Of a DNA stretch of 64,000 nucleotides, positions 16,392-64,000 are shown piece after piece. Made by a program: the position numbers and the translations under genes. The notes under the pieces are model-generated. The model saw nothing but the letters and a program-made list of their open reading frames with translations, was not told the origin of the DNA and ran no database searches. The stretch comes from Tubulanus polymorphus (lineage: Eukaryota > Animalia > Nemertea). The DNA is taken from assembly GCF_964204645.1 (NCBI RefSeq), contig NC_134034.1, forward strand, positions 930,001 to 994,000, written 5' to 3'. Position 1 is the first letter of the stretch. Each line of letters starts with the position of its first letter.

Positions 16392-17225
16392 TCTCCGAAC
16401 GTCTTCAATCTGCTGTCTATACTGCCGTTCATTTCTGTCTATATGTCTATTTATGTCTGTCTCTTAGTCGAATGAATCTTCAAATTTGTACCATTAGAAA
16501 TTTCTGAAGTTTGTATAGCCGCGCTTTCAAAACGGTTTCAAATAAGATTTCGTCATAATTTTTTTTAACATCGCTCAGAAAATAAAGGCTAATTCATCTT
16601 CAACTCTGAATCCAATCTTGATTCACAACTGTGGAAATGGAGCCTGATTTCACAGTTAACTCTAACTCACAACTGTGGAACTGGATCCTGAGTTCACAGT
16701 TAACTCTTACTAACAACTGTAGAACTGGATCCTGATTTCACAGTTAACTCTTACTAACAACTGTGTAACTGGATCCTGATTTCACAGTTAACTCTTACTA
16801 ACAACTGTGGAACTGGATCCTGAGTTCACAGTTAACTCTTACTAACAACTGTGGAACTGGATGATGAGTTCTGAGTTAACTCTTACAACTGTGGACTATG
16901 AATTTACTAGATGTGATAAATTCTCAGCAATAACTGTATCAGCAGGCGACAGTTCTTTATATCAAAAAAGCAGTGCAATTGTGATCTCTGGTTAGGGACC
17001 TAGTCATCACCACGGAGAATGTGACCACCAGGGGACGCCACCATTGTCAACCAGTGATCTGTCTGCCACTAGGAGGCGTATTGATCGATTATTCCACGTA
17101 AATGGAAACCTGACGACGAAAAAAAATTTCAATCTAGGTGTTTTTATTTGAAGTTACGTCCCGATGATACCAGTAGAGAAATGATTTCGTTAATAAATGA
17201 GTTGATCCATTTAAAAGGGAAATTA

Positions 17226-17405: not shown

Positions 17406-17807
17406 CTGAAAAGAAAGTATATGAGTGTGAAATATGTGTATTACATTATTCCTACAAAAACTCGATCCACAGAAATTCTGGAAATTATGTACAACTATTT
17501 GAATGTTAAAATTGAAGGATGACCCGTAGACTTTTGTTTCCAGTGAGGACTTCGCAGTTGTCTATGGGCACTCGAGGATTCCACTAGTGGAAAGTGGGGG
17601 ATCCACCAGATGTCGTTAGTGTGCACTTGGACTGAAACTACACTGTGGCTACTGTGGCAATGGATGATATCATTTGTGGCAAGCTAGAATCCACTAGGTG
17701 TCGCTAGTGAGCACTTGGACTTAAGATGAACTGATGCTACGGTGGCAATGGAGGATTCCGCTTATGGCAAGTTAGGATCCACCAGGTGTCGCTAATGTAC
17801 ATTAGCA

Positions 17808-17967
17808 TATTATTAACTTTTGGGTTAAAACAGTATCTGGAAAGCAAACCAAACTTAATTCAGTATTTTGTAAAATATCTTTCAATTTATTTTTAAGGGA
17901 TAAATTTAAGAGCCCTTGGTTAGGGTTATATATTTTGTTACGTTTTAATTCTCTAAATTTTAATCAC
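17808..17967 (+). mobile_element. Internally deleted remnant of the LINE at 19506-20291 (co-duplicated)
   Basis: Encodes IINFWVKTVSGKQTKLNS..RDKFKSPWL, then jumps to the LINE 3'UTR sequence tatattttgttacg. Confidence 0.7.
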
Positions 17968-18500
17968 ATCGTGAAATATGTTTTACTGCATGTACGAATA
18001 CAAATTGATTATAGCGGTTTTAAATGCATGGGTTCCTGATAAACAGAATTGTTGAAATCATGAAGTTGATTACTCAGTTGTCGTTCAACGATAACGAATA
18101 TCATTGAATAAAAGCTGATGTAAAAAATGTTCATTTCCTTTTTTTAACTGAGCAAAAATAGTCGACATTTCGGACGGTTTAAATTGCAATATTTGATTCC
18201 ATAAGTCAACGATTGAGAATATGAATAGAAGTTATGTTAACTATTGAAGAAACGCTATCCCGTGTTGTGACGGTAAACAGACAATCCCACACTGGTATAA
18301 CTAAAGATGGTTACATTATTGAAATGCAAACCTTTGGACATTGAAAATAGTAAGTAATGATAGGAAAAAATGTTTATTGTCGGGATTTGAACCTGATTTG
18401 TACACAACACCTCATTGTATTATATCGCAGTAACACCTCACAAATTACTTTCGATATGACAGAGTTCGAACAAACACTATGGGACTATTCAGGTATGCAC

Positions 18501-18565: not shown

Positions 18566-18906
18566 ATATCGGATTCAATCTCACCATTACGATTTCCTAG
18601 TTCTCCAACGCTACGAACCATGCAATACTCAGAAGACACTATCATGTTTTGTACAACATATTGCCCAATAAGTACGTGTGACGTTGCCGAAGTCATTACC
18701 GCTATCGTCATCTGGATACGATTAAAAAATAACCTTGCCTATTGTTGTTCTCTTCCACTAGGTGGCGTATCGATTTGATTCCGCCTCAAATTGAAAAACA
18801 AACAAATAATGAATTTAAGTTATGGTTTTTGTTTCTATTTGAAGTCCACTATCGATGATAAACTGATATTGTTATCAAACAAGTTGACCTATTTATAGGG
18901 AAATCA

Positions 18907-20370
18907 TCAACCAGTTCGTTCTTTTCTCACACATTCGTTACGGCATGCGACTATTTCGTTTCGAGAAGTTGCTCCCATTTCACACATAAACTCACAGGCC
19001 TGCATAAGTTCCAAACGACTATCCCTTTTATCTTTGATTGAATAAGCGCCACCTGCGATCATCATCAGAACTAGAACTACCAGATACTGAAAAGAAAGTT
19101 TATGAGTGTAAAATATGTGTAATTACATTATTCCTACAAAAACTCGATCCACAGAAATTCTGGAAATTATGTACAACTATTTGAATGTTAAAATTGAAGG
19201 ATGACCCGTAGACTTTTGTTTCCAGTGAGGAATCCACCATTGCCTATAGGCACGCGAGGATTCCACTAGTGGAAAGTGAGGATCCACCAGATGTCACTAG
19301 TTGTGCCAGTTGAGGACTTAAACTACACTGTGGCCACTGTGGCTTCTGTGGCAATGGAGGATATCATCATTTGTGGCAAGTCAGGATCCACTAGGTGTCG
19401 CTAGTGAGCACTTGGACTTAAGATGAACTGATGCTACGGTGGCAATGGAGGATTCCGCTTATGGCCGAGTTAGGATCCACCAGGTTTCGCTAATGTACAT
19501 TAGCATATTATTAACTTTTGGGTTAAAACAGTATCTGGAAAGCAAACCAAACTTAATTCAATACTTTATAAAATATCTTTCAATTTATTCTAAGGGATAA
19601 ATCTAAGAGCCCTTGGTTATCATTTATAAAGAAAACCTTTGATGACTGTGGTTTGTCCTGCATTTGGACGCAGCAATTCATGACAAACAGTAAATCTTTT
19701 TCAAAACGAATAAAACAGATACTCCGTGACCAACACCTTCAAGAAACTGTATCTGCCATAAATACTAATCCGATATGCACTAACTTTAGGCAATATAAAA
19801 ATGATGTTAGGTTAGAGAAGTATATAATAGAACTTGGTGATGACTTAGGAACTAGTTTATTTGAATTTAGGGTCGAGACCTATATTTTACCTGTGAACAA
19901 ATTTTCAAACCTTCATTTAGACAGAGCCGATAGAATATGCCCCACTTGTAATACTTTAGGTGACGAATCCCATTTTCTGTTTGACTGTACCTTACTTAAC
20001 GAACAACGCAAAAACTTTTTGAATTTGAATACCTTTAATACCCTTGATATTCTGAAAAACCCAACGGTCAACTTAGCTAAATTCATTAAGACCGGCTTAG
20101 ATGTAAATAGATCCCTCCAATAGTATATATAGTATTGTAAATAGTTGATGTATATATATTTTGTTACGTTTTCATTCTCTAAATTTTAATCACTTTAGTG
20201 TTGTTTTGTAAATATTTGTATATACATGTGTAATAGTTTTCCTCCATATACCATGGAAATGGTTGGAGTGTAAATAAAATCGTAATCGTAAACATAACCT
20301 ACTGCGGCAATAGAGGATTTGACAGTTTTTCAAAAGATAACTATTAATGAATTACCTTCGATGAGAACAT
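18907..20370 (-). CDS. Secreted Cys-rich peptide paralog 2 (4 Cys); exons 20370-20356, 19086-18907
   Basis: ATG TTC TCA TCG AAG|gtaatt ... tttcag|: MFSSKYLVVLVLMMIAGGAYS-IKDKRDSRLELMQACEFMCEMGATSRNEIVACRNECVRKERTG*. Confidence 0.8.
19506..20291 (+). mobile_element. 5'-truncated non-LTR retrotransposon (RTE-X-like) 3' fragment
   Basis: ORF2 C-terminus with CCHC motif (RICPTC..GDESHFLFDC), homologous to 26892-28755; 3' motif cctcca..accat..atggttggagtg and short (aatcgt)n tail; one frameshift near 19590. Clade is inferred. Confidence 0.85.
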
Positions 20371-21465
20371 TCTGCTCCGATTCTGTAGATTTCAGGTTCC
20401 CGATCGCGTTTGTGAAGTCGATGTGAAATATGTTTTACTGTATGTACGAATACAAATTGATTATAGCGGTTTTAAATCCATGGATAAACAGAATTTTTGA
20501 AATCAATCGACTTCAAGTTGATTACTCAGTTGTTATAAAAATATATTGTATTGAAATAAACAGCCATATAAAATATTGATTTCCTTTGTCCCTGAACGAA
20601 AATAGTGCATGGTTTTAACAAAGACTTTATTCATTATTCCTATGGAGTGAAATAGTTCTCGAATCGTTGAAGTCGAAAATGAAAAGGTCATCGTCAGTTA
20701 CTAATGATGGGGGATTATGAAATTATGATGTCTTTAATGAGAATAATCTCTGATTGAGGAGAACAGGAGCTGTCATAAAACCACAATGTGTGAAAGGAAT
20801 AAAAGTCCAATATTTGATTCCATATTTAACGTTTTATGGTCCATGAATGAGAAAAACGTTCATCGTCAGGAAAAAAACGTTTTTTTTTTCACGAAATAGG
20901 CACTGATTAATTTGCGAAAAACGTATTGTGTAGTCGAAAACGTTTTTTGTACTGTGTCCGTTGAACGTTTCATCGTTTGCGGGTGAAACTTTTTACAAAA
21001 AACCGTTTTGCGAAAAACGCGTTTTCTGTTATGGCGAAACAAAATGTTATGCCGTGTGCGGCGGGCTTAAGAATTTGTTGAAACACGTCGACTCTGCCTT
21101 AAAACTAACCTATTGACAGTACCGTTTGTGGCATCTGAAGCTATAAGCTTATCGGACAGAGAATAACTTTTTATTCACCTTACAAAACTTCTCAAAATAA
21201 AAGTAAACAGCGATTAACAGGTAGCGCTTCTGCTCTACGCCCTTAAATTAACATTTAATCATTTTGATTTTATCTAATTTTATTGTGCGGTATTTCACAA
21301 TGTTACCAATTGACTGAGTTTACAAGATTGACATTTTTAAGCTGTCCTATAATATAGAAATATCAGACCGATTTATAGAAAGCGTTCCGTTCTGTTCCTT
21401 TCTTCACGCATCACCGTGAACTTGAAGTTTAGTTGTTTCCGATAGATGGCGAACTAGTCGCGTTT

Positions 21466-22900
21466 TCACGCCTGCGGTAGTTTATAATAATCCCAAACGC
21501 TTTGGACCAACTCCATGTCTGCGGGTTTCCAGAAAATCAGTTCATCGATTATTACCGGCGCGTCCGTGAAAAGATTCGTACCTCGCTCGACCAGACAGGC
21601 TATCGTAGATTCGTCTCTGTATATTTCAGTGCTTTGTCCGAGAGAACCATTTACGTACATGTTCGCCCATTGCAGGTGACTCCAAGTGACTGTTACGTGG
21701 ACCCAGCCGACCCCGACTGCAGTTGTACTTGACAATTTTTGTTTTCTGACGTTGTTGCTGTTTTCGTAGCAAACCTCAATTTGCAGTTTCAGATAACCGC
21801 CTTGTTGTTGGTACATCCTTCTATGAGTATTAGTAAAGAAGTTGTGGTCAGTCTGATCTACCTCTGTGACGTACAACCAGAACATCAACGCAAACCCGTC
21901 CGGGCCGCATTCCGCATAATCCCCTGCGAAACAACCTAAATCTCTTACTGTCCCGAAACGGATGAAAGATCCTTTTACAGGCATTCGCAACGCGTATTTA
22001 GAGAACGTTCCGCCTATGACGTCGTAACCGGACCCGTACATAGTGGCGTTTAGTTTGGTGCCGATACAAACCGCGTTAGCCTTATCTACTTTATCCATCG
22101 AGAAATATTGAGATGCGTCTGCAGAAAAAAAATCAATCAATGAACATCGAATCGATTCATAAACCAAAGGATTCAATGTAAGCGATTTGTTTTATTACTA
22201 TTATATCCACTTACTTATCAATTGGTTTAACTAACTAATTATCGTAAGAACTAATCAATTAGTTTGATTAACAAATTTGTTTGATAAGTCATAATTTCAA
22301 TTAACCAGTCATTTAGATCGTCTGCTTACCATTCGTATAATATTCGCAGTTTCTACCGAAGAAACTCGTCGTGCATTCAACGCTGCCATCTACCGGATTT
22401 TCATTACCCTATTATGCAAATTATCACTTAATAGTTGAGCGATTTATTGTCAGGATTGAAAATAGTTTGAATCGTTTGAAAATACTTTCTATGAAAGTCA
22501 TGATCTTCAAAATTTCAAAATAAATGAAATGTGTAAATATTTTTTGCATAAATAAGATTGTCTACTTAGTTTGTGTTCTTACCGTTCGTTGCTCGTAGAA
22601 TTCCGTATCATCCGAAGTGGGTTCGAGTCCCGTACAATTCAAATCGGAAGTGCGCGAGTAATGGCGGCACATCCGGTTTGTTTTCGAGTATGAGACTGAT
22701 TGACAGCGATCGTCTGCCCCGCATCGTCTAAAACAGTCCAGATATCGTCGAGTTTCTTTGAAATCGTAGATCGACTCGAAAACAGGAATCATATTTTTAC
22801 AGTTTGGAGGTCGTTTGAAGCGCTGTTGCTCAGCCGTATCTTGGCCGTTTGCCAAATTCATCATTGTTACAAACCACACAGATAGGAACACAACTAACAT
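21466..22900 (-). CDS. Secreted PAN/Apple + partial EGF-like + LamG/concanavalin-A-like protein (~349 aa); exons 22900-22583, 22408-22330, 22118-21466
   Basis: Signal peptide; PAN-type CFRRCGADDRCQSVSY..MC; CTTSFFGRNC; LamG/pentraxin-like FALMFWL, WVHVTVTW, MYVNG, IIDELIFW; splice phases 0 and 1 are consistent. Confidence 0.8.
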
Positions 22901-23734
22901 GTTGTATCGGGTTCAACACGTCAGATATTTCTATAAGATAGTACAAAAATCGTTTTTTGAATTATGGGGCTAATTGTACAATTCAATGTTCAAAAGACAA
23001 GTGGGCACAGCCCACCTGGACTGAGGGACTGATTATGAAGAGCTTGTCTAAAGGACAACTTGGATGTTTTCAAAAAGGAAATGAATAATGTGAACCGCGC
23101 ACAGAAATGCAGCATATTTTCTTGTCTCCAAAAGCATGGTAGGCTTGTTCAAGTCTCATGATCGAGCCCCTTTGGTTCTGCCCCCGATTCATTTCACTAC
23201 AAAGAACAATTTTTCGTGCCCAAATTTTTGTTTACGCCACGGAGCTTACTATTCGGTCAGCATTCTTAGAAAGGAATCTTTCAACAATCGATTGTTTCAA
23301 AAGAAAATGCGTTTGTTAATAAGAAAAACGGTGAATAAGAAAAAAAAACGCTTTGAATAAGAAAAACGGTGAAATACAAGGTGTACCCCAAGGTGAAAAT
23401 AGATTCTTACAGTATGTATCAAATATAATGAGCTTTCTGCATGTGCTGAGTTGTGCCTTCAAAAATAAAAGGTGGGGGTACCTCAAGGGGAATAGTTGGA
23501 CTCGATAAGTTTTCAATGAGTCCCGATGAAATAAACGGAATACTTACCTGTAACGAGAGCGAATTTCAGATCCAAACCGAACGAATCGATTATCGCAATG
23601 AAAACTGAGAGCAGATTTCATAAAATAATTTAACCGTTGCGACTTTCGTTACGAGTCAGATATTTTGATAACCGTATTTTAATGAAGTACAGTGAATCGT
23701 ATTATCAGGGGACTTATTTCGGGACTCGCTGAAG

Positions 23735-24391
23735 CTCTGTATAAGGCGGCACTAGTTCATGAAGTGAAGGGTTTCGGGACTCGCTGAAGCCCTGTATAAG
23801 GCGGTGCTTGGTCATGTAGTGAAGGGTTTCGGGACCCGTTGAAACTTAAGTAAGGAGCGCTAGTTCTTGTAGTGGAGGGTTCCGGGATTCTCTGAAACTC
23901 TGAGCAAGGAGGCGCTAGTTCATGTAGTGGAGGGTTCCGGGATTCTCTGAAACTCTGAGCAAGGAGGCGCTAGTTCATGAAGTGGAGGGTTCCGGGATCC
24001 TCTGAAACTCTGAGCAAGGAGGCGCTAGTTCATGAAGTGGAGGGTTCCGGGATCCTCTGAAACTCTGAGCAAGGAGGCGCTAGTTCATGTAGTGGAGGGT
24101 TCCGGGATTCTCTGAAACTCTGAGCAAGGAGGCGCTAGTTCATGAAGTGGAGGGTTCCGGGATCCTCTGAAACTCTGAGCAAGGAGGCGCTAGTTCATGT
24201 AGTGGAGGGTTCCGGGATCCTCTGAAACTCTGAGCAAGGAGGCGCTAGTTCATGAAGTGGAGGGTTCCGGGATTCTCTGAAACTCTGAGCAAGGAGGCGC
24301 TAGTTCATGAAGTGGAGGGTTCCGGGATCCTCTGAAACTCTGAGCAAGGAGGCGCTAGTTCATGTAGTGGAGGGTTCCGGGATCCTCTGAA
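23735..24391. repeat. 55-bp tandem minisatellite (gaaactctgagcaaggaggcgctagttcatgaagtggagggttccgggatcctct)
   Basis: ~9 near-identical units preceded by diverged units. Confidence 0.95.
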
Positions 24392-26469
24392 TCTATATCT
24401 ATTTCATAGGCTCTAGGTTGTGAAACGTAAAATAAGCGAGTGTGATATTTTCATTATCGTAAAAATATATCGAATTGAATAATTAATTATCAAAAAATAA
24501 CAACAGATAAATCGTTGATCAGTTGATTGTTTCCAAGAGCTTTTTGCGAAATTGGTTTCATGCCTGAAAGGTCGTCATCTCGATGTGATGGGTAGAGGCT
24601 ATGAACCTGGGTATTCAGGCTATATACATTTGTCCTGTTAATAAAGGATTCGAATCAGATTCACGATGCAGTGGTTAAATGAACGTCTCTTGAGATTCTT
24701 GGTGACGTGGTAACGTTTATAATACCACAACAACTCGCAGGGTTCGAACCCAACCTCATGATTTCTATAGTCGACGTATCGGTTAGCCGAGACACCGCAG
24801 AAGCTGCTTATATGACGTCACGACTTTTGGATTGGAAACTACTATCACTGGGATTCGAACCCAAAATAAGAGAAACGCGTTACGACATACGATATACGAT
24901 AGAACCTAGTTTCACAAAAAGGGTGACTCCTCAAAAACTACTGGACTCAGTTTCACAATAAGGGGACTCCTCAAAATCAACTGGTCCTAATTTCACAAAA
25001 AGGGTGACTCCACAAAATTTGCTGGACCTAGTTTCAGACAAAAGAATTAACTCCAAAGAATCTACGGGATCGATCTTCAGAAAAAAAGGATTAAGTTCGA
25101 AATCCATTTAGTATATACACAATTGATATAGAAATTAAATCGATTTTAGAGTTAGTTATTTGTGAAACAGATCCCTATTTTCGAGAGTAAAGTCGATTCA
25201 AATTATAATTGTTTTTCGCGTATTTACATTTTCAGCTGTTTCTGAAAATCGAGTATCAAGTGACACGTTTTTTTGTATTTGTACAATTCTTTGAAATTGA
25301 ATATCGTGCATATATGTTCCACGCACGTTCAACATTAAAGCTTGAGGCCAATATTAAGTTACTAGGCCTCGATATGCCCAAAGACACGAAAAAATAAACT
25401 ACGTCGAATTGTACAAGTGGACTAAGACTGAAGTTGCCATACTTATGAAATAAGAAATTAAAACTGTTAAATAAATGAACTCCGTGGGTCCTGAGATACA
25501 ATTTGATTCTGCGGTATTAGAAGATTCCCTTGAACTAATCTAAGTAGAGCCTTTAGCGTTCATCGAACTAGCGACTGGTCATATCGGGTCGCTAGTTAAC
25601 AAGCATCCCGCTCGCATCGAAAATCTTGTATGAACAAGCAACTGCATGGCTTATGCCAGTCTCTAGATCAAACATCGACGGCAACTGAGATACGTTATCT
25701 AGCAAATATTCTCGAGGGCATCCCACTTGTCATATCGCTTTGTTTTTGTCAGTTGCAACCATGTATGGTTGATTATGGAGCGCTTACATCGACGGATATA
25801 TGACCGTGACTGAGTATAACCAGTTGCTCAAAAGTAGAACATGAAAAACTGGCTGCAACTGGAGATAGATCGCTTACCAGTCATAGCGTGCATCGACGCA
25901 TTCAAACATCTGATTCTATCCTGCCAGTTCCTCTCCAGGCGCGGATCCAGGTCCATTCAATGACTACAGCACAGTGAAAAAGGGCACCAACTTTGAAAAG
26001 GGCCAGTATTAATGCCCTGCGAGTGAGTTTGAGTGCCATTTATTTGTATCACGGGACTTAATTTGCCTTCGCATTCTATTTGCTTGTGCCTTTTCACGTA
26101 CGCCGAAAACTGCCTTGCAGCAACTAGTTCAATGTCTCGAGCTACTTCGTCAACGTACGTTAGGCTTTTAAGAGACCATAAGACTGTGGAGAATCTTGGC
26201 GACTTCAACGATTCAGTAAGAATATGATTAATGACGATCTTTTCATTCTCGATGATAAGTTTTTCGTTTCGTGAAACCGGGTTTAGGAACAAATTGAGAA
26301 CTGTTACATCGTCACCATTAGCTGCCTAAAATGATTCAGTGTAATGCGATATTTATATCTGTCAGTAAAATACGATACCGAATTCAGTACGTGTCAATGG
26401 CGGATAGAATTAAAACCAATCTTATCATCTTCACAATTTCAACAATTTTGTTTTACCATGAACTCGCTC

Positions 26470-26477
26470 TATTTAAA
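26470..26477 (+). promoter_or_regulatory. TATA-like box of peptide paralog 3
   Basis: TATTTAAA ~95 bp upstream of the ATG at 26568; homologous TTTAAAA / TATTCAAA motifs occur at the equivalent position in the other paralogs. Confidence 0.45.
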
Positions 26478-26567
26478 CGGCGATAACATTCGTATTCGTG
26501 CAGTAAAACTCATTGCATCGACTTCACAAACGCGATCCGGATCTGAAATCTACAGAATCGTAGCAAC

Positions 26568-29500
26568 ATGTTGTCATCAAAGGTAATTTATTAATTGTTC
26601 TAAAACTGTGGAATCCTCAACTGCTGCAGTAGTTGATGTAAGATAGATAAGATAAGATAAGATATTTATTTCACTCCAACCATAAGAATGGTACGTGGAG
26701 GCAAGATTGAATACAAAATATGGAATATAAAAATTTACAAAACATGAACAGAATTATATACATATATACAAAACAAAATAGGAATTAACAAAATTTAAAA
26801 TCAAACTTTCAGTAATAAAACTATTTACAAACAAAGCAAGTACAGAGATTGAATTATATACAGCAAGATATATCACACGTATATACACAATTCACTGGAG
26901 GGATTTGTATAAACTTAAACCTAACTGGATAAATTTAGCTAGTTGTGGGGTAGGATTCCTTAATATTTCCAAGTTTCTGGACATACTTAAATGGATGGAA
27001 TTATCACGCAGATCACTTAGCAAAGTGCAGTCATAAATGAAGTGAAGCTCATCTCCTACGGTGTTACAGGCAGGGCACAGTCTTTCACTTCGGTCTATAT
27101 GAGCGTTCGATCGATTATTTACCGGTAATAAATAGGAACCAATTCTGAATTCGAATAAGCTATGCACAAGACTTCCGTCAAGTTGAGTTATATATTTTTC
27201 AAGCCTAACATCGTTCTTATATAGTTTGAAATTAACATACTGCTGATCGTCATTCACTTTTTGAAGCATTTCTTGTACGTGTTGGTCACGGAGGACTTGT
27301 TTCACGTACTTGGAGAGCGTTTTATAATTTTCCGTGTATTGCTGTAACCATATGTAAGATAAGCCAATGTCGTCAAATATTTTCTTTATATACAATAACC
27401 AAGGGGACTTGTGTTTTTCGCGTACATACAGATTGAGGGATATACGGTACAGGATTGCATTAAGTTTTGAATCTTTGCCGGTAACAGTTTTAAGCCAAAA
27501 GTTTACCATCCTCCGTTTTACCTCGATACTCATGGGGTACCGCCCAAGTTCAGCTAATACCTGCAGGTTGTGCGAATATTTTGACACTTTCATAATAATT
27601 TTGCAAAACGTACAGTGCAGACTCTCTAATAAATCGAGGCTTTCAAAGCCCCATATCTCACAACCATATAACGCAACGGGTGCGACGCACATATCGAATA
27701 GTTTCAGCAAAACATCTATCGGGAGCTTCAAGCGTCTGCCTTTTTGTATTACCGAGAACATTGCTCTCATTGCCTTGTCATATAGATATTTTTTTGCTTT
27801 GGCGAAGCTGCCATTCCAATTGAACTTAACTCCCAGGTATAGATAGTCCTCAACGATCTCAATCTCATCTGTGCCAAACATAAACTTTGTATCTATCTTG
27901 ATCCTACATTTACTTCTTGCAAAAATTAAAACTTTAGTTTTATCGATATTAACCGTTAAATCGTTTTCTAAACAATATGCATACAAAGTATCCAGCTGCG
28001 ACTGCAGTGAATTTTCATCCTCAGCTAAGATAACTGTGTCATCTGCATACAGAATAATAAATAGATTTAACAGGGTGTCAAGATCATGATCGCAGTCCGA
28101 ATTCAGCTTTTCTATAAATGAGAGAGTTGGATTACCATTACCCACGAAAAATGCCTCTATATCATTTAAATAGAGTGAAAATAGGATTGGTGATAGATTT
28201 TCGCCCTGTCTCAAACCTCTGCCGGCAGTGAAATATTGTGAGGTATTGCCATTATATTTTACGCACGATTTTACAGAGTCGTACATGCTTTTAATAATGT
28301 TCAGGAAGTTTCCTGTAATACAATTACTAATAAGTTTCTTCCAAAGAGTTACTCTACAGATTGAATCAAATGCCTTTTTAAAATCTACGAACGCACAGAA
28401 CAGTCTTCTCCCCTGGCCAAGGTACAGTTCAACAATGGTTTTAAGAGTGTAGATATGATCAACTGTCGAGTATTTAGATCTGAAACCACCCTGGGCTTCA
28501 CTTATAATATTGTTTGCATCTAAAAATAGAGATAGTCTCTGATTCAATATGCTCGTAAACAGTTTTCCTAGGCAGCTCACTAGAGTGATGCCTCTGTAAT
28601 TATCGGGATCGTCGGGATCACCTTTGTTCTTGTAGATCGGTTTGATCACCCCAATCGACCAAGTATCCGGTACATGGCCAGTCCTTAGAACAAGATTGAA
28701 TAGGTTTTGCAAAATATTAACTAAATAGGGATATCGGTTGACTTTTAGCAATTCAGTTCTACTGCACACTAGCGACACCTAGTAGATCTTCACTTGTCGC
28801 ATGGAATCCATTATTGCTGCAGTAGTTGATGTTCTACTGCACACTAGCGACACCTAGTAGATCTTCACTTGTCGCATGGAATCCATTATTGCTGCAGTAG
28901 TTGATGTTCTACTGCACACTAGCGACACCTAGTAGATCTTCACTTGTCACATGGAATCCATTATTGCTGCAGTAGTTGATGTTCTACTGCACACTAGCGA
29001 CACCTAGTAGATCTTCACTTGTCACATGGAATCCATTATTGCTGCAGTAGTTGATGTTCTACTGCACACTAGCGACACCTAGTAGATCTTCACTTGTCAC
29101 ATGGAATCCATTATTGCTGCAGTAGTTGATGTTCTACTGCACACTAGCGACACCTAGTAGATCTTCACTTGTCACATGGAATCCATTATTGCTGCAGTAG
29201 TTGATGTTCTACTGCACACTAGCGACACCTAGTAGATCTTCACTTGTCACATGGAATCCATTATTGCTGCAGTAGTTGATGTTCTACTGCACACTAGCGA
29301 CACCTAGTAGATCTTCACTTGTCACATGGAATCCATGATGTAGTTGATGTCCTACTGCACATACGTGGCACCTGGTAAGATCCTCACTATATCTGCAATC
29401 CCCACGTGCTTTCGCCATTGCGGAGTCCTCACTGTCTCTAGGGGTCATCCAACCATTTATGCATTCAAATATCTGATCATACGTTATTTCCAGAATTTCT

Positions 29501-29773
29501 GTGAATTGTTTTTATTTCTTTTTTGAATAGAAATATTGTTCGTTACTCAGAAAATATACAGCTTTTAAAATCAATATGCTTTCATTTCAGTATCTGGTAG
29601 TTTTAGTTCTGATAGCGGTCGCTGATGGCGCTAATTCTGATGTATGTGCGACATGTTTAACGCTCTGCGAGAAGAGGTGTCAATTTTACGTGAATAACGG
29701 GCCTGGTGTTGTCACTCATTGCATTGAGAAAAAGTGTCCCTTTATCTGTGCAAAACGGTGTAAGCAGAACTAG
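26568..29773 (+). CDS. Secreted Cys-rich peptide paralog 3 (8 Cys, cationic); exons 26568-26582, 29591-29773
   Basis: ATG TTG TCA TCA AAG|gtaatt ... tttcag|: MLSSKYLVVLVLIAVADGANS-DVCATCLTLCEKRCQFYVNNGPGVVTHCIEKKCPFICAKRCKQN*; AATAAA at 29840. Confidence 0.85.
26640..28755 (-). mobile_element. 5'-truncated non-LTR retrotransposon (RTE-X-like), uninterrupted RT and C-terminal zinc knuckle
   Basis: ORF 26892-28755 with NYRGITL, QGGFR, FVDFKKAFDS, GLRQG..LSP, LYADD, YLG and CPAC..DELHFIYDC; (tctta)n 3' tail. Clade is inferred. Confidence 0.92.
28756..29410. repeat. 75-bp tandem repeat (gttctactgcacactagcgacacctagtagatc...gcagtagttgat), ~8 copies
   Basis: Near-identical units; family also at ~9445-9515, 17545-17807, 19225-19505, 35630-35712, 40020-40612 and 59460-59565. 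Confidence 0.95.
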
Positions 29774-30154
29774 TCATGATGTCAACTCGTTAAGAAACGA
29801 TATCATTTTCTCTGCTGGTATCAGCGAGAGATGACTTCAAATAAAACCCCGAACTTAAATTAGTTTTTTTGTTTGTTTTTATATTTGGCTTAAGTAATTA
29901 GATCAATGCGCCCCCTAGTGGCAGATAGATCGAAGGATAATAATGGTGGCATCCCGTGGTGGTCAAATCTCCCGTTAATATGAATTAAACTGATTAAGTT
30001 TTTTGTTTACTAGGGCCTTAAACGTGCTAGAACGTGCAAGAGGATTTTAGACGTTATCAAAGCACTGTCTAGCCAGTTACAGGATCTAACATTAACCTTG
30101 TCATTGTTCGAGAAAAGTTCGTTCGGAATATTGCCTCTTCGCCGGCGCAGTCAT

Positions 30155-33913: not shown

Positions 33914-35187
33914 CTGTAACGATAGACCCACACGTAATGACATAACGGTGAAAAAAAAACTAGTTTGAAAAAGACTAGTTTTTTGTCTACAAAATCTTCG
34001 AAGAGATTGACTGTATTTACGTAGGAATGTATCTCCCATGCCCGCGTGATGCCATGTTGTGGGATCTCTGGGGCGTGTCATTATGTCTACAATTCTGCCT
34101 AACGGATGAAAACCCTTAAACATTAACTAATTACCTTTTCGTCTGAACGTTGCAAGAATTTTCAAGAATATTTGCGTCGTCGTCGTCAAAGTCGAGTGTG
34201 CCCACCAAATGAAATCTCATTAAATGTAGTCACACAAAACGTCAAGAATTGCGGAGTATGAATAGCGCTGACAAACAGGTGGTGGGAAATACGTTGTGTT
34301 AGAGATTATTACTGATAGGACCCGTATTGCCTTATTGTATGCGTAACAAATGCACTCGCATTAAAAGTTGCCACACACAAAGCGTGAAGAATTGATGAAT
34401 AGAAACACTGATAAACAGGTGACGGGAACCAGACATTGTGTTAGTGAAGAATGCTGATGGGACCTGCATTTCTAAGAGAAGCAGATTTTACAGATTATTT
34501 GCGCCATTATGTAAGCTGCCTGCACCGTATTCATTCACTATTCACAAAAAGAAGCGTGAATTCATGAATTGATGAATAGAAATAGCACTGATAAACAGGT
34601 GACGGGAACCAGTCATTGTGTATGAGAAGAATGTTCAATTGGACAATGGGCAAAATTCTTTGAAAAATGACGGCAGGATTTATACCTAACAAAATATGTG
34701 AAAGTGATCTCCTCTACCCCGTGAAAATCCCTCCAAATTTATTCCAATCCAAGTACAGCTATTATTGGAACATATCAAACTCGAATGAATAGATAATATC
34801 TCCGCTGAGGAGCATACATTTTGCCGTTATTTATCCGTCTGTTTGTTTCAGAAACAAAGCTGTGTCAACAAAATGATTAATTTTCTACGAATCCAGTTCA
34901 TAATACCTCTGTCGTGGTCCATGTTGGTTGTTCTGCGGTAGATTTCTTTTCAATGTCCATTAGGTATCAGTTCTTTCCATCAGCATAGATACAATAAATG
35001 CTTGAAGAAAATGTACTACGGTCTATCTACCACTAGGGGGCGTATCGATCTAATTGTCCGCGTCAAATTGACAAACGATCGAATAAACGAATAGATGTTG
35101 CATGTTTTTTTATTTGAAGTCGTCTCGGTGACACCAGCAGAGAAAACTGATGTCGCTTTGAAACAATGCTACGTCATCATTTTAACC

Positions 35188-35762
35188 CTACGACGGGCAT
35201 GTAGGACATTTTCTATAACAGTCACCCATACATTGTGGAAACGCAGGCAAAAGTAAATCGATAAAAGGGAGACAGCCAGGATAACAGTTCTCGTGACATT
35301 TTACTTGACACGCCCACTCCTTAGCAATACCAGGGTAACCAATGTTCTATGAATAAGCGCCGCCAGCGACCATCATCAGAACTAGAACTACCAGATACTG
35401 AAAGGAAGGTCTATCATTATAAAATCTGTGTGTTTTCAATCTAGAAACGGAGGGATGACCCGTGAGCTTTCGTTTAACGACGAGCACTACGCAGTGGCCT
35501 GGGCACGAGAAGATCCTCCAGGTGTAAATGTTGGCCTCAAATTGCTTAAGTAAACTACATGTAGATCTCTATTATTTTATCCTATGCGCATTATCGATCG
35601 TAAATCATCGATTGGACTAATCAATCGATCACCTACTGCGGCAATCGAGGATCCACCAGGTGTCAATAATGAACACTGGGACATTAACCACTGCAGCAAT
35701 AGAGGATTCCATAGTTTTACAAAAGGGAGAAATATTAATTAGATAACCATTGATGACAACAT
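35188..35762 (-). pseudogene. Secreted Cys-rich peptide paralog 4 (8 Cys) with an in-frame TAG; exons 35762-35748, 35397-35188
   Basis: MLSSM|YLVVLVLMMVAGGAYS*NIGYPGIAKEWACQVKCHENCYPGCLPFIDLLLPAFPQCMGDCYRKCPTCPS*; TAG at 35349-35347. Confidence 0.75.

Positions 35763-39835: not shown

Positions 39836-64000
<24,165 letters not shown>

Follow-up and report, generated by a model that had tools for sequence, protein, structure and literature searches.

Long interspersed nuclear elements that probably insert at a measured distance from a CTCF-type word in the nemertean Tubulanus polymorphus

Among long interspersed nuclear elements (LINEs), several strategies for choosing an insertion site have been described. 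R2, which targets the 28S ribosomal DNA (rDNA), pairs a restriction-like endonuclease with N-terminal zinc-finger/Myb domains, and its separate DNA-binding domains recognize DNA away from the cleavage site, resulting in a nick at a measured distance. The retroposons of the ingi/L1Tc clade of trypanosomatids exhibit a “relative site-specificity” in which a short conserved motif lies upstream of the insertion; their non-autonomous partners show the same upstream pattern, which has been interpreted as the site bound by the element's own endonuclease (PMC3820030). Specific LINEs usually rely on such recognition by their own proteins (PMC4640811, PMC3820030), and a preference for multicopy targets has been suggested as a way of limiting damage to the host (PMC4640811). 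In Dictyostelium, TRE5-A lands ~50 bp upstream of tRNA genes via the TFIIIC/IIIB complex (PMC3159450). Here, a 64,000-nucleotide stretch of contig NC_134034.1 from the nemertean Tubulanus polymorphus (“the window,” whose numbering is used below) provides another example. Two diverged LINEs, LINE-A and LINE-B, interrupt the same base of a 75–77-bp repeat in two paralogous introns, and comparison with copies elsewhere in the genome indicates that the group to which they belong probably integrates at a measured distance from a 15-nt word of CTCF type, with the repeat unit hit as a carrier of this motif.

The introns belong to four small paralogous genes in which exon 1 ends after 5 codons, a phase-0 intron follows, and exon 2 supplies a signal peptide and a Cys-rich peptide. 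Units of a 75–77-bp minisatellite form the start of the intron. Paralog 3 is a plus-strand gene with the end of exon 1 at 26582; after 57 intron nucleotides comes the tail of LINE-B, which begins at 26640. This 5'-truncated copy (26640–28757, minus strand, ~2117 nt) comprises a 621-codon open reading frame (ORF) with reverse transcriptase (RT) and CCHC regions (26895–28757; RVT_1 in Pfam, E=5e-31) and a (TATCT)n tail at 26640–26664; at its 5' end (28755–28757) the interrupted unit resumes into a 7.7-copy array of 75-bp repeats. In paralog 2, a minus-strand gene, the 3' end of LINE-A (20291) is reached after 64 intron nucleotides. The LINE-A copy (19505–20291, plus strand, ~787 nt), likewise 5'-truncated, retains the C-terminal part of the ORF, the 3' untranslated region, and an (AATCGT)n tail at 20276–20291, and the unit resumes beyond its 5' end at 19505. 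Both elements are antisense to the host gene and cut the unit at the same base. The initial annotation had placed both insertions antisense and at one point ~60 nt into the intron, with differing truncations and tails; all of the junctions it quoted are in the sequence. Its statement that the frames are largely open holds for LINE-B, which is open over all 621 codons, and only in part for LINE-A, which is open over 156 codons but interrupted by a frameshift and stops within the first ~45 codons at its 5' end. The empty site that it reported in paralog 4 is also there: the unit is uninterrupted, and the plus-strand stretch 35653–35681 consists of the motif described below (35653–35667), a 13-nt spacer, and the predicted nick between 35680 and 35681.

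The feature common to insertions of this group across the genome lies on their 5' side. The 5' junctions of 42 truncated copies were set by comparing copies with each other, and the motif was scored as the best match out of 15 positions in the 60 nt upstream of each junction, with windows from the same loci as controls. The flanks carry the 15-mer CCAC[CT]AG[AG][GT]GGCGC[TA], always on the LINE sense strand, and 15 of the 42 flanks reach a score of at least 12/15 there, whereas the antisense strand does so in 1 of 42 and the control windows in 4 of 415 (Fisher p=6e-14). An unbiased count of 5-mers leads to the same word: GGCGC is present in 14/42 flanks and 2/725 controls (p=2e-17), and the overlapping enriched 5-mers reassemble the 15-nt motif. 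It is seen upstream of both the LINE-A and the LINE-B families. Beyond it, the 22 motif-bearing flanks have no mutual similarity, with spacers and downstream sequences that differ, and the logo built from them agrees with the canonical motif of CTCF given in PMC10589630. The word is thus best described as a putative CTCF-type site, its core matching the consensus. In its strict form it occurs 516 times in the genome, against a single occurrence of a reversed control, and it is present in unique DNA as well as in several repeat families. Among these is the 75–77-bp unit, every copy of which carries the motif with one mismatch, GTCGC in place of GGCGC. In the interrupted unit of paralog 2 the motif (19477–19491, plus strand) has two mismatches and the LINE-A 5' junction lies 13 nt downstream; in that of paralog 3 (28771–28785, minus strand) the motif is followed by 13 nt, a possible 2-nt target duplication (AC), and the 5' end of LINE-B.

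The spacing between word and insertion is similarly constrained. From motif end to LINE 5' junction the modal distance is 14 nt. The position of the first (primer-strand) nick, readable only in copies with a readable target duplication, is exactly 13 nt after the motif in L022 (8-nt duplication), L063 (5 nt), and paralog 3 (2 nt), and the same value is obtained in paralog 2, which has none. The longer motif-junction distances in L022 and L063 equal 13 nt plus the length of the duplication, a rule with which L047, L021, and L023 are compatible, their probable duplications of ~3–6 nt having been read by eye; target duplications in general range from 0 to 8 nt. Intact units and paralog 4 have an identical 13-nt spacer before the insertion point. 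Integration is orientation-specific, with a first nick 13 nt 3' of a motif that is left intact and a variable cleavage of the second strand.

These regularities suggest a mechanism in which LINE-A and LINE-B would be members of one old non-LTR group of T. polymorphus, characterized by a common 3' box, several types of microsatellite tail, an RT, and a C-terminal CCHC. Target-primed reverse transcription (TPRT) would begin at a fixed distance from the word that constitutes the CTCF consensus; an endonuclease positioned by a motif-bound protein would nick the complement of the motif strand, exactly 13 nt beyond the 3' end of the word. The element would thereby be laid down in one orientation, its 5' end beside the intact motif and its tail pointing away. 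Hits at the same base of two paralogous introns would follow because each unit carries a one-mismatch word that different families struck independently.

Several kinds of reader may be imagined for the motif. A DNA-binding surface of the element's own proteins, positioning the endonuclease, is slightly favored for this role. Somewhat less probable, yet a serious alternative because the word is identical to the CTCF consensus, is a host protein bound there as guide or roadblock, most plausibly CTCF, which would act as the Pol III factors do for TRE5-A (PMC3159450). In a more specific and rather doubtful version, host CTCF already on the DNA would guide or stop the LINE particle so that the nick falls where the footprint of CTCF ends, at 13 nt from the motif and always on the same side. 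The use of pre-existing nicks seems improbable. Variants with GTCGC are used at least tenfold less, which is compatible with element-encoded and CTCF-guided recognition alike. The one-mismatch motif of the unit is consistent with a lower use per site than that of canonical words, with high copy number keeping the hot spot visible.

The motif marks other sites of repeated insertion as well. A repeat resembling a miniature inverted-repeat transposable element (MITE), here termed repeat X, lies at 47740–48009 of the window and has a ~212-bp core, imperfect inverted ends, and an inverted motif with its 13 nt on both sides, without assignment to either strand; the motif is canonical at one end and the GTCGC variant at the other. 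On C3 (G000:C3 0.4–1.24 Mb), repeat X reappears every ~40–50 kb in the form of motif pairs spaced by 213 nt. A genome-wide search for the LINE 3' box joined to the start of the X core returned 13 junctions versus 0 in the control; the tails among them are of four or more types, and no junction is further than a few bases from the expected point. The nick position and orientation found in paralogs 2 and 3, L063, and L022 thus recur here to within a few nucleotides. In L030, the insertion is at the opposite end of X. In L007 and L010, a LINE-A tail adjoins the first base of a 795-nt LINE-B copy, at a place where the sister copy L016 has the motif and 13 nt. Insertion sites are therefore reused and elements stack, because the motif survives insertion. 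A small foldback element with 27-nt arms starting GGACATTAG is located between inverted motif-plus-13 sites (in the 3' flanks of L013, L016, L007, L010, and L002), and 5 of the 29 LINE-B copies are found at its edge. Three LINE-A copies (L033, L039, and L049) have another flank in common, beginning GGGCCGATACG.

That the target might be the 75–77-bp dispersed repeat itself, in the manner of Tx1L in Tx1D or of R1/R2 in rDNA, is suggested by four independent insertions at the same base and in the same orientation of the unit. Chance does not account for these. Given ~476 LINE 3' boxes and ~970 unit-type sites in 268 Mb, ~0.003 coincidences are expected at one position and orientation, against at least three to four independent same-point insertions found. 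The unit site is a real hot spot, yet it holds <1% of the copies. In a genome-wide pattern search, the LINE 3' box is joined to the unit in only four cases, two of them in the window; the others are a LINE-A copy at C10:1409956 (L063), with another truncation point and a 5-nt target duplication (ACATC), and, at C12:11211832, an older A-like copy (L086). Of the 60 copies sampled, 58 (29 further copies of each family) have 3' flanks unrelated to the unit, and a logo of these 58 flanks has no consensus. Microhomology between tail and target is absent at the unit site. As the rule of motif plus 13 nt also accounts for insertions in unique DNA and in other repeats, the group does not target the repeat itself, and a repeat-as-target reading has very little chance of being right. 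The initial annotation had proposed a lineage that targets this dispersed repeat, to be examined by a logo of the flanks at the 3' end, with random flanks counting against it. On the 3' side the flanks are indeed random; the targeting itself stands, with the target moved to the CTCF-like 15-mer, which lies on the 5' side and ends 13 nt short of the nick. A related possibility is that the LINEs home to transposons, either MITE or Helentron ends, and that the motif is a passenger mark and no signal. Many copies do lie in motif-bearing repeats, including repeat X (L021, L037, L060, L030), the small foldback element (L002, L007, L010, L013, L016), and the 77-bp unit, but the 22 motif-bearing flanks resemble neither each other nor these repeats beyond the 15-mer, and their spacers and downstream sequences differ, making this quite unlikely. 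Even less credible than targeting of the repeat is a structural hot spot in which endonucleases or stray nicks favor the loop of a small inverted repeat of the unit (7-bp stem) irrespective of the motif. The inverted repeat is visible around the nick in the paralog 3 units, but the stem has decayed in the paralog 2 and paralog 4 versions, other target sites have only the upstream motif in common, no inverted repeat was seen at other nicks by eye (no dedicated inverted-repeat scan was made), and the fixed orientation and 13-nt spacing elsewhere would be left unexplained. Once the motif had been found, the loop became superfluous as an explanation and was dropped.

A different question is whether the two insertions in the window are two events at all or the remains of a single one that predates the duplication of the paralogs and has since decayed neutrally. 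LINE-A and LINE-B are 67% identical in DNA and 53% in protein, in keeping with the estimate of the initial annotation that about half of their residues differ, and the intron flanks of paralogs 2 and 3 are 67–72% identical, or about as diverged as the LINEs. Because flanks and elements have diverged to a similar extent, divergence alone cannot decide between one insertion and two. The copies elsewhere in the genome do: at least 17 other copies match the 3' 461 nt of LINE-B at 96–100% identity, the whole LINE-B copy differs from copy L004 by one mismatch in 1957 nt, and LINE-A is 96–98% identical to many copies of its family. One old insertion followed by decay is refuted by these near-identical copies (96–99.9% identity for each LINE), and it is further at odds with the 621-codon frame still open in LINE-B, with the differing tails and truncation points, with the empty site of paralog 4, and with a nonsynonymous divergence (pN 0.27) far below that at silent sites, which are saturated (pS 0.83); it is almost certainly wrong. 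LINE-A and LINE-B represent two old families with separate activity, and their insertions here are recent and independent, as the near-identical copies, the contrast between pS and pN, and the empty paralog 4 together establish; on this point the initial annotation had reached the same conclusion. A third piece of LINE-A occurs in the paralog 1 segment (17808–17967, plus strand, with the motif at 17779–17793), with an internal deletion and 95–98% identity. Its truncation point is that of the paralog 2 copy and the segment around it is duplicated, so the piece is a duplicate of that insertion and not a separate event. Elsewhere, 5 of 21 LINE-A copies (L036, L037, L041, L046, and L059) have truncation points that fall in one 25-nt stretch, located ~715 nt from the 3' end, a clustering that may represent a preferred stop of reverse transcription.

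Assignment of these elements to the LINEs follows from the RVT_1 domain of the LINE-B ORF together with variable 5' truncation, a common 3' end and tail, and short or absent target duplications. As all A and B copies at hand are 5'-truncated, the layout of the endonuclease was read from relatives 40–51% identical in the RT region. Found in molluscs, a crab, and metagenomes, these relatives have an ORF2 of ~1080–1200 aa that includes an apurinic/apyrimidinic-type (APE) endonuclease (Exo_endo_phos above the Pfam cut-off) and an RT, as well as the C-terminal CCHC of the LINEs described here, CX2CX7HX4C. A relative with 51% identity has sequence matches in PDB to the RTs of R2 and L1 ORF2p; matches in the ESM Atlas are to generic RVT_1 clusters only. 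An ORF1 of ~410 aa lies in frame with ORF2, one stop codon between them. In the metagenome relatives L088, L089, L090, L093, and L100 the two ORFs are in the same frame with this single stop, which suggests stop-codon readthrough or reinitiation. The initial annotation had likened the elements to RTE-X; an in-frame ORF1 of this size together with a C-terminal CCHC is not known from the classic RTE layout. Pfam recognizes no DNA-binding domain in the proteins of the relatives and no RNase H domain in LINE-B.

Several observations weigh against integration at a measured distance from the CTCF-type word. The motif is present in only 36% (strict) to ~65% (permissive) of the resolved copies, in a sample of 42 junctions; motif-less copies may be off-target, older, or mis-bounded. 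A few copies (L051, L005, L002) have the motif 1–5 nt from the junction. Further complicating the picture, 80 relatives on metagenome contigs show no enrichment of the motif (9 sense versus 5 antisense weak matches, none with the GGCGC core), although this comparison is underpowered and the 5' ends of these relatives are undefined. Finally, the endonuclease and any DNA-binding domain attributed to LINE-A and LINE-B would be those of relatives only 40–51% identical to them.

Compared with the systems already described, the T. polymorphus elements combine features of several. Like ingi/L1Tc, they are dispersed LINEs, presumably of APE type, preceded by a conserved short motif, their flanks otherwise unrelated, so that “relative site-specific” describes them well. 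Unlike ingi/L1Tc, their word ends 13 nt before the nick, leaving a free spacer, and equals the CTCF consensus, and LINE-B lacks a Pfam-recognizable RNase H domain. With the APE LINEs of the R1 and Tx1 clades (R1, TRAS/SART, Tx1L, Keno, Kibi) they share a precise 3' junction, a fixed orientation, reuse of sites, and a variable 5' junction. Those elements, however, occupy almost exclusively one multicopy gene or repeat, whereas here the target is a 15-nt word spread across both unique DNA and a number of repeats, with at least a third of the copies lacking it: the unit holds 4 of ~476 copies, and the motif accounts for 15/42 (strict) or ~27/42 (permissive), well short of a strict single target. 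As in TRE5-A, insertion occurs at a set distance and orientation from a DNA landmark, which in TRE5-A is protein-bound, and not at a recognized cleavage sequence; in T. polymorphus the offset of 13 nt is exact to the base, a CTCF-type word serves as the landmark, and any host factor is putative. The measured nick recalls R2, from which the relatives of the T. polymorphus LINEs differ in having an APE endonuclease and no Pfam-recognizable DNA-binding domain.

The surroundings of the insertions provide additional detail. Exons of the paralogs were translated one at a time, so the following are separate exon reads and not joined gene models. In paralog 2 (minus strand), the coding part of exon 1 (20356–20370) is 5 codons followed by a gt donor, and exon 2 (18907–19086) encodes the signal peptide and Cys-rich peptide; in paralog 3 (plus strand), exon 1 (26568–26582) likewise ends in a gt donor after 5 codons, and exon 2 begins at 29591. 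A single deletion in paralog 1 (17960–18010) removed both exon 1 and the 3' end of LINE-A, paralog 4 has a stop codon directly after the signal peptide (35340–35400), and both look like pseudogenes. Just beyond the 3' end of all four paralogs, a near-perfect CTCF-like motif is kept in conserved context (17066–17080, 18755–18769, 29907–29921 on the minus strand, and 35030–35044); none of these four holds a LINE. The array adjoining LINE-B (28756–29336, minus strand) consists of 7.7 units of 75 bp that are 99% alike, each with the motif and an unoccupied +13 site. Regarding a known RNA origin of the 75–77-bp unit, ARAGORN (tRNA) and Rfam gave no relevant match, the sole result of the screen being spurious isrG matches in a 33-bp tandem repeat. 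Every unit of a 50-bp tandem repeat at 42494–42610 also contains a near-perfect CTCF-like motif, on the reverse strand. A separate gene located between paralogs 2 and 3 (21466–22900, minus strand) encodes a signal peptide, and Pfam places a PAN domain in one of its exons and a Laminin_G_3-like domain in another.

Literature searches found no published description of LINEs that home to CTCF-type motifs, although such an absence is not proof. Several diverged families of one group, of APE type as judged from their relatives, home to a 15-nt word of the kind bound by transcription factors, with an offset exact to the base and in fixed orientation. They offer a clean system for asking how APE LINEs come to recognize a target away from the site that they cut, and whether TPRT can be steered by an architectural protein of the host. 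For tools of gene insertion, where R2 is already of interest, integration at a measured distance and in a specific orientation beside a short, programmable word has practical appeal as well. For the genome of T. polymorphus, homing to this word accounts for recurrent same-site insertions in otherwise unrelated repeats, and the prediction that follows from it is a continual loading of LINE sequence onto one side of CTCF-type sites, among them those that other transposons have spread. If CTCF were indeed the reader, this would be the first animal LINE group directed by a protein of chromatin architecture, and sites of insulator type would be subject to continual remodeling.

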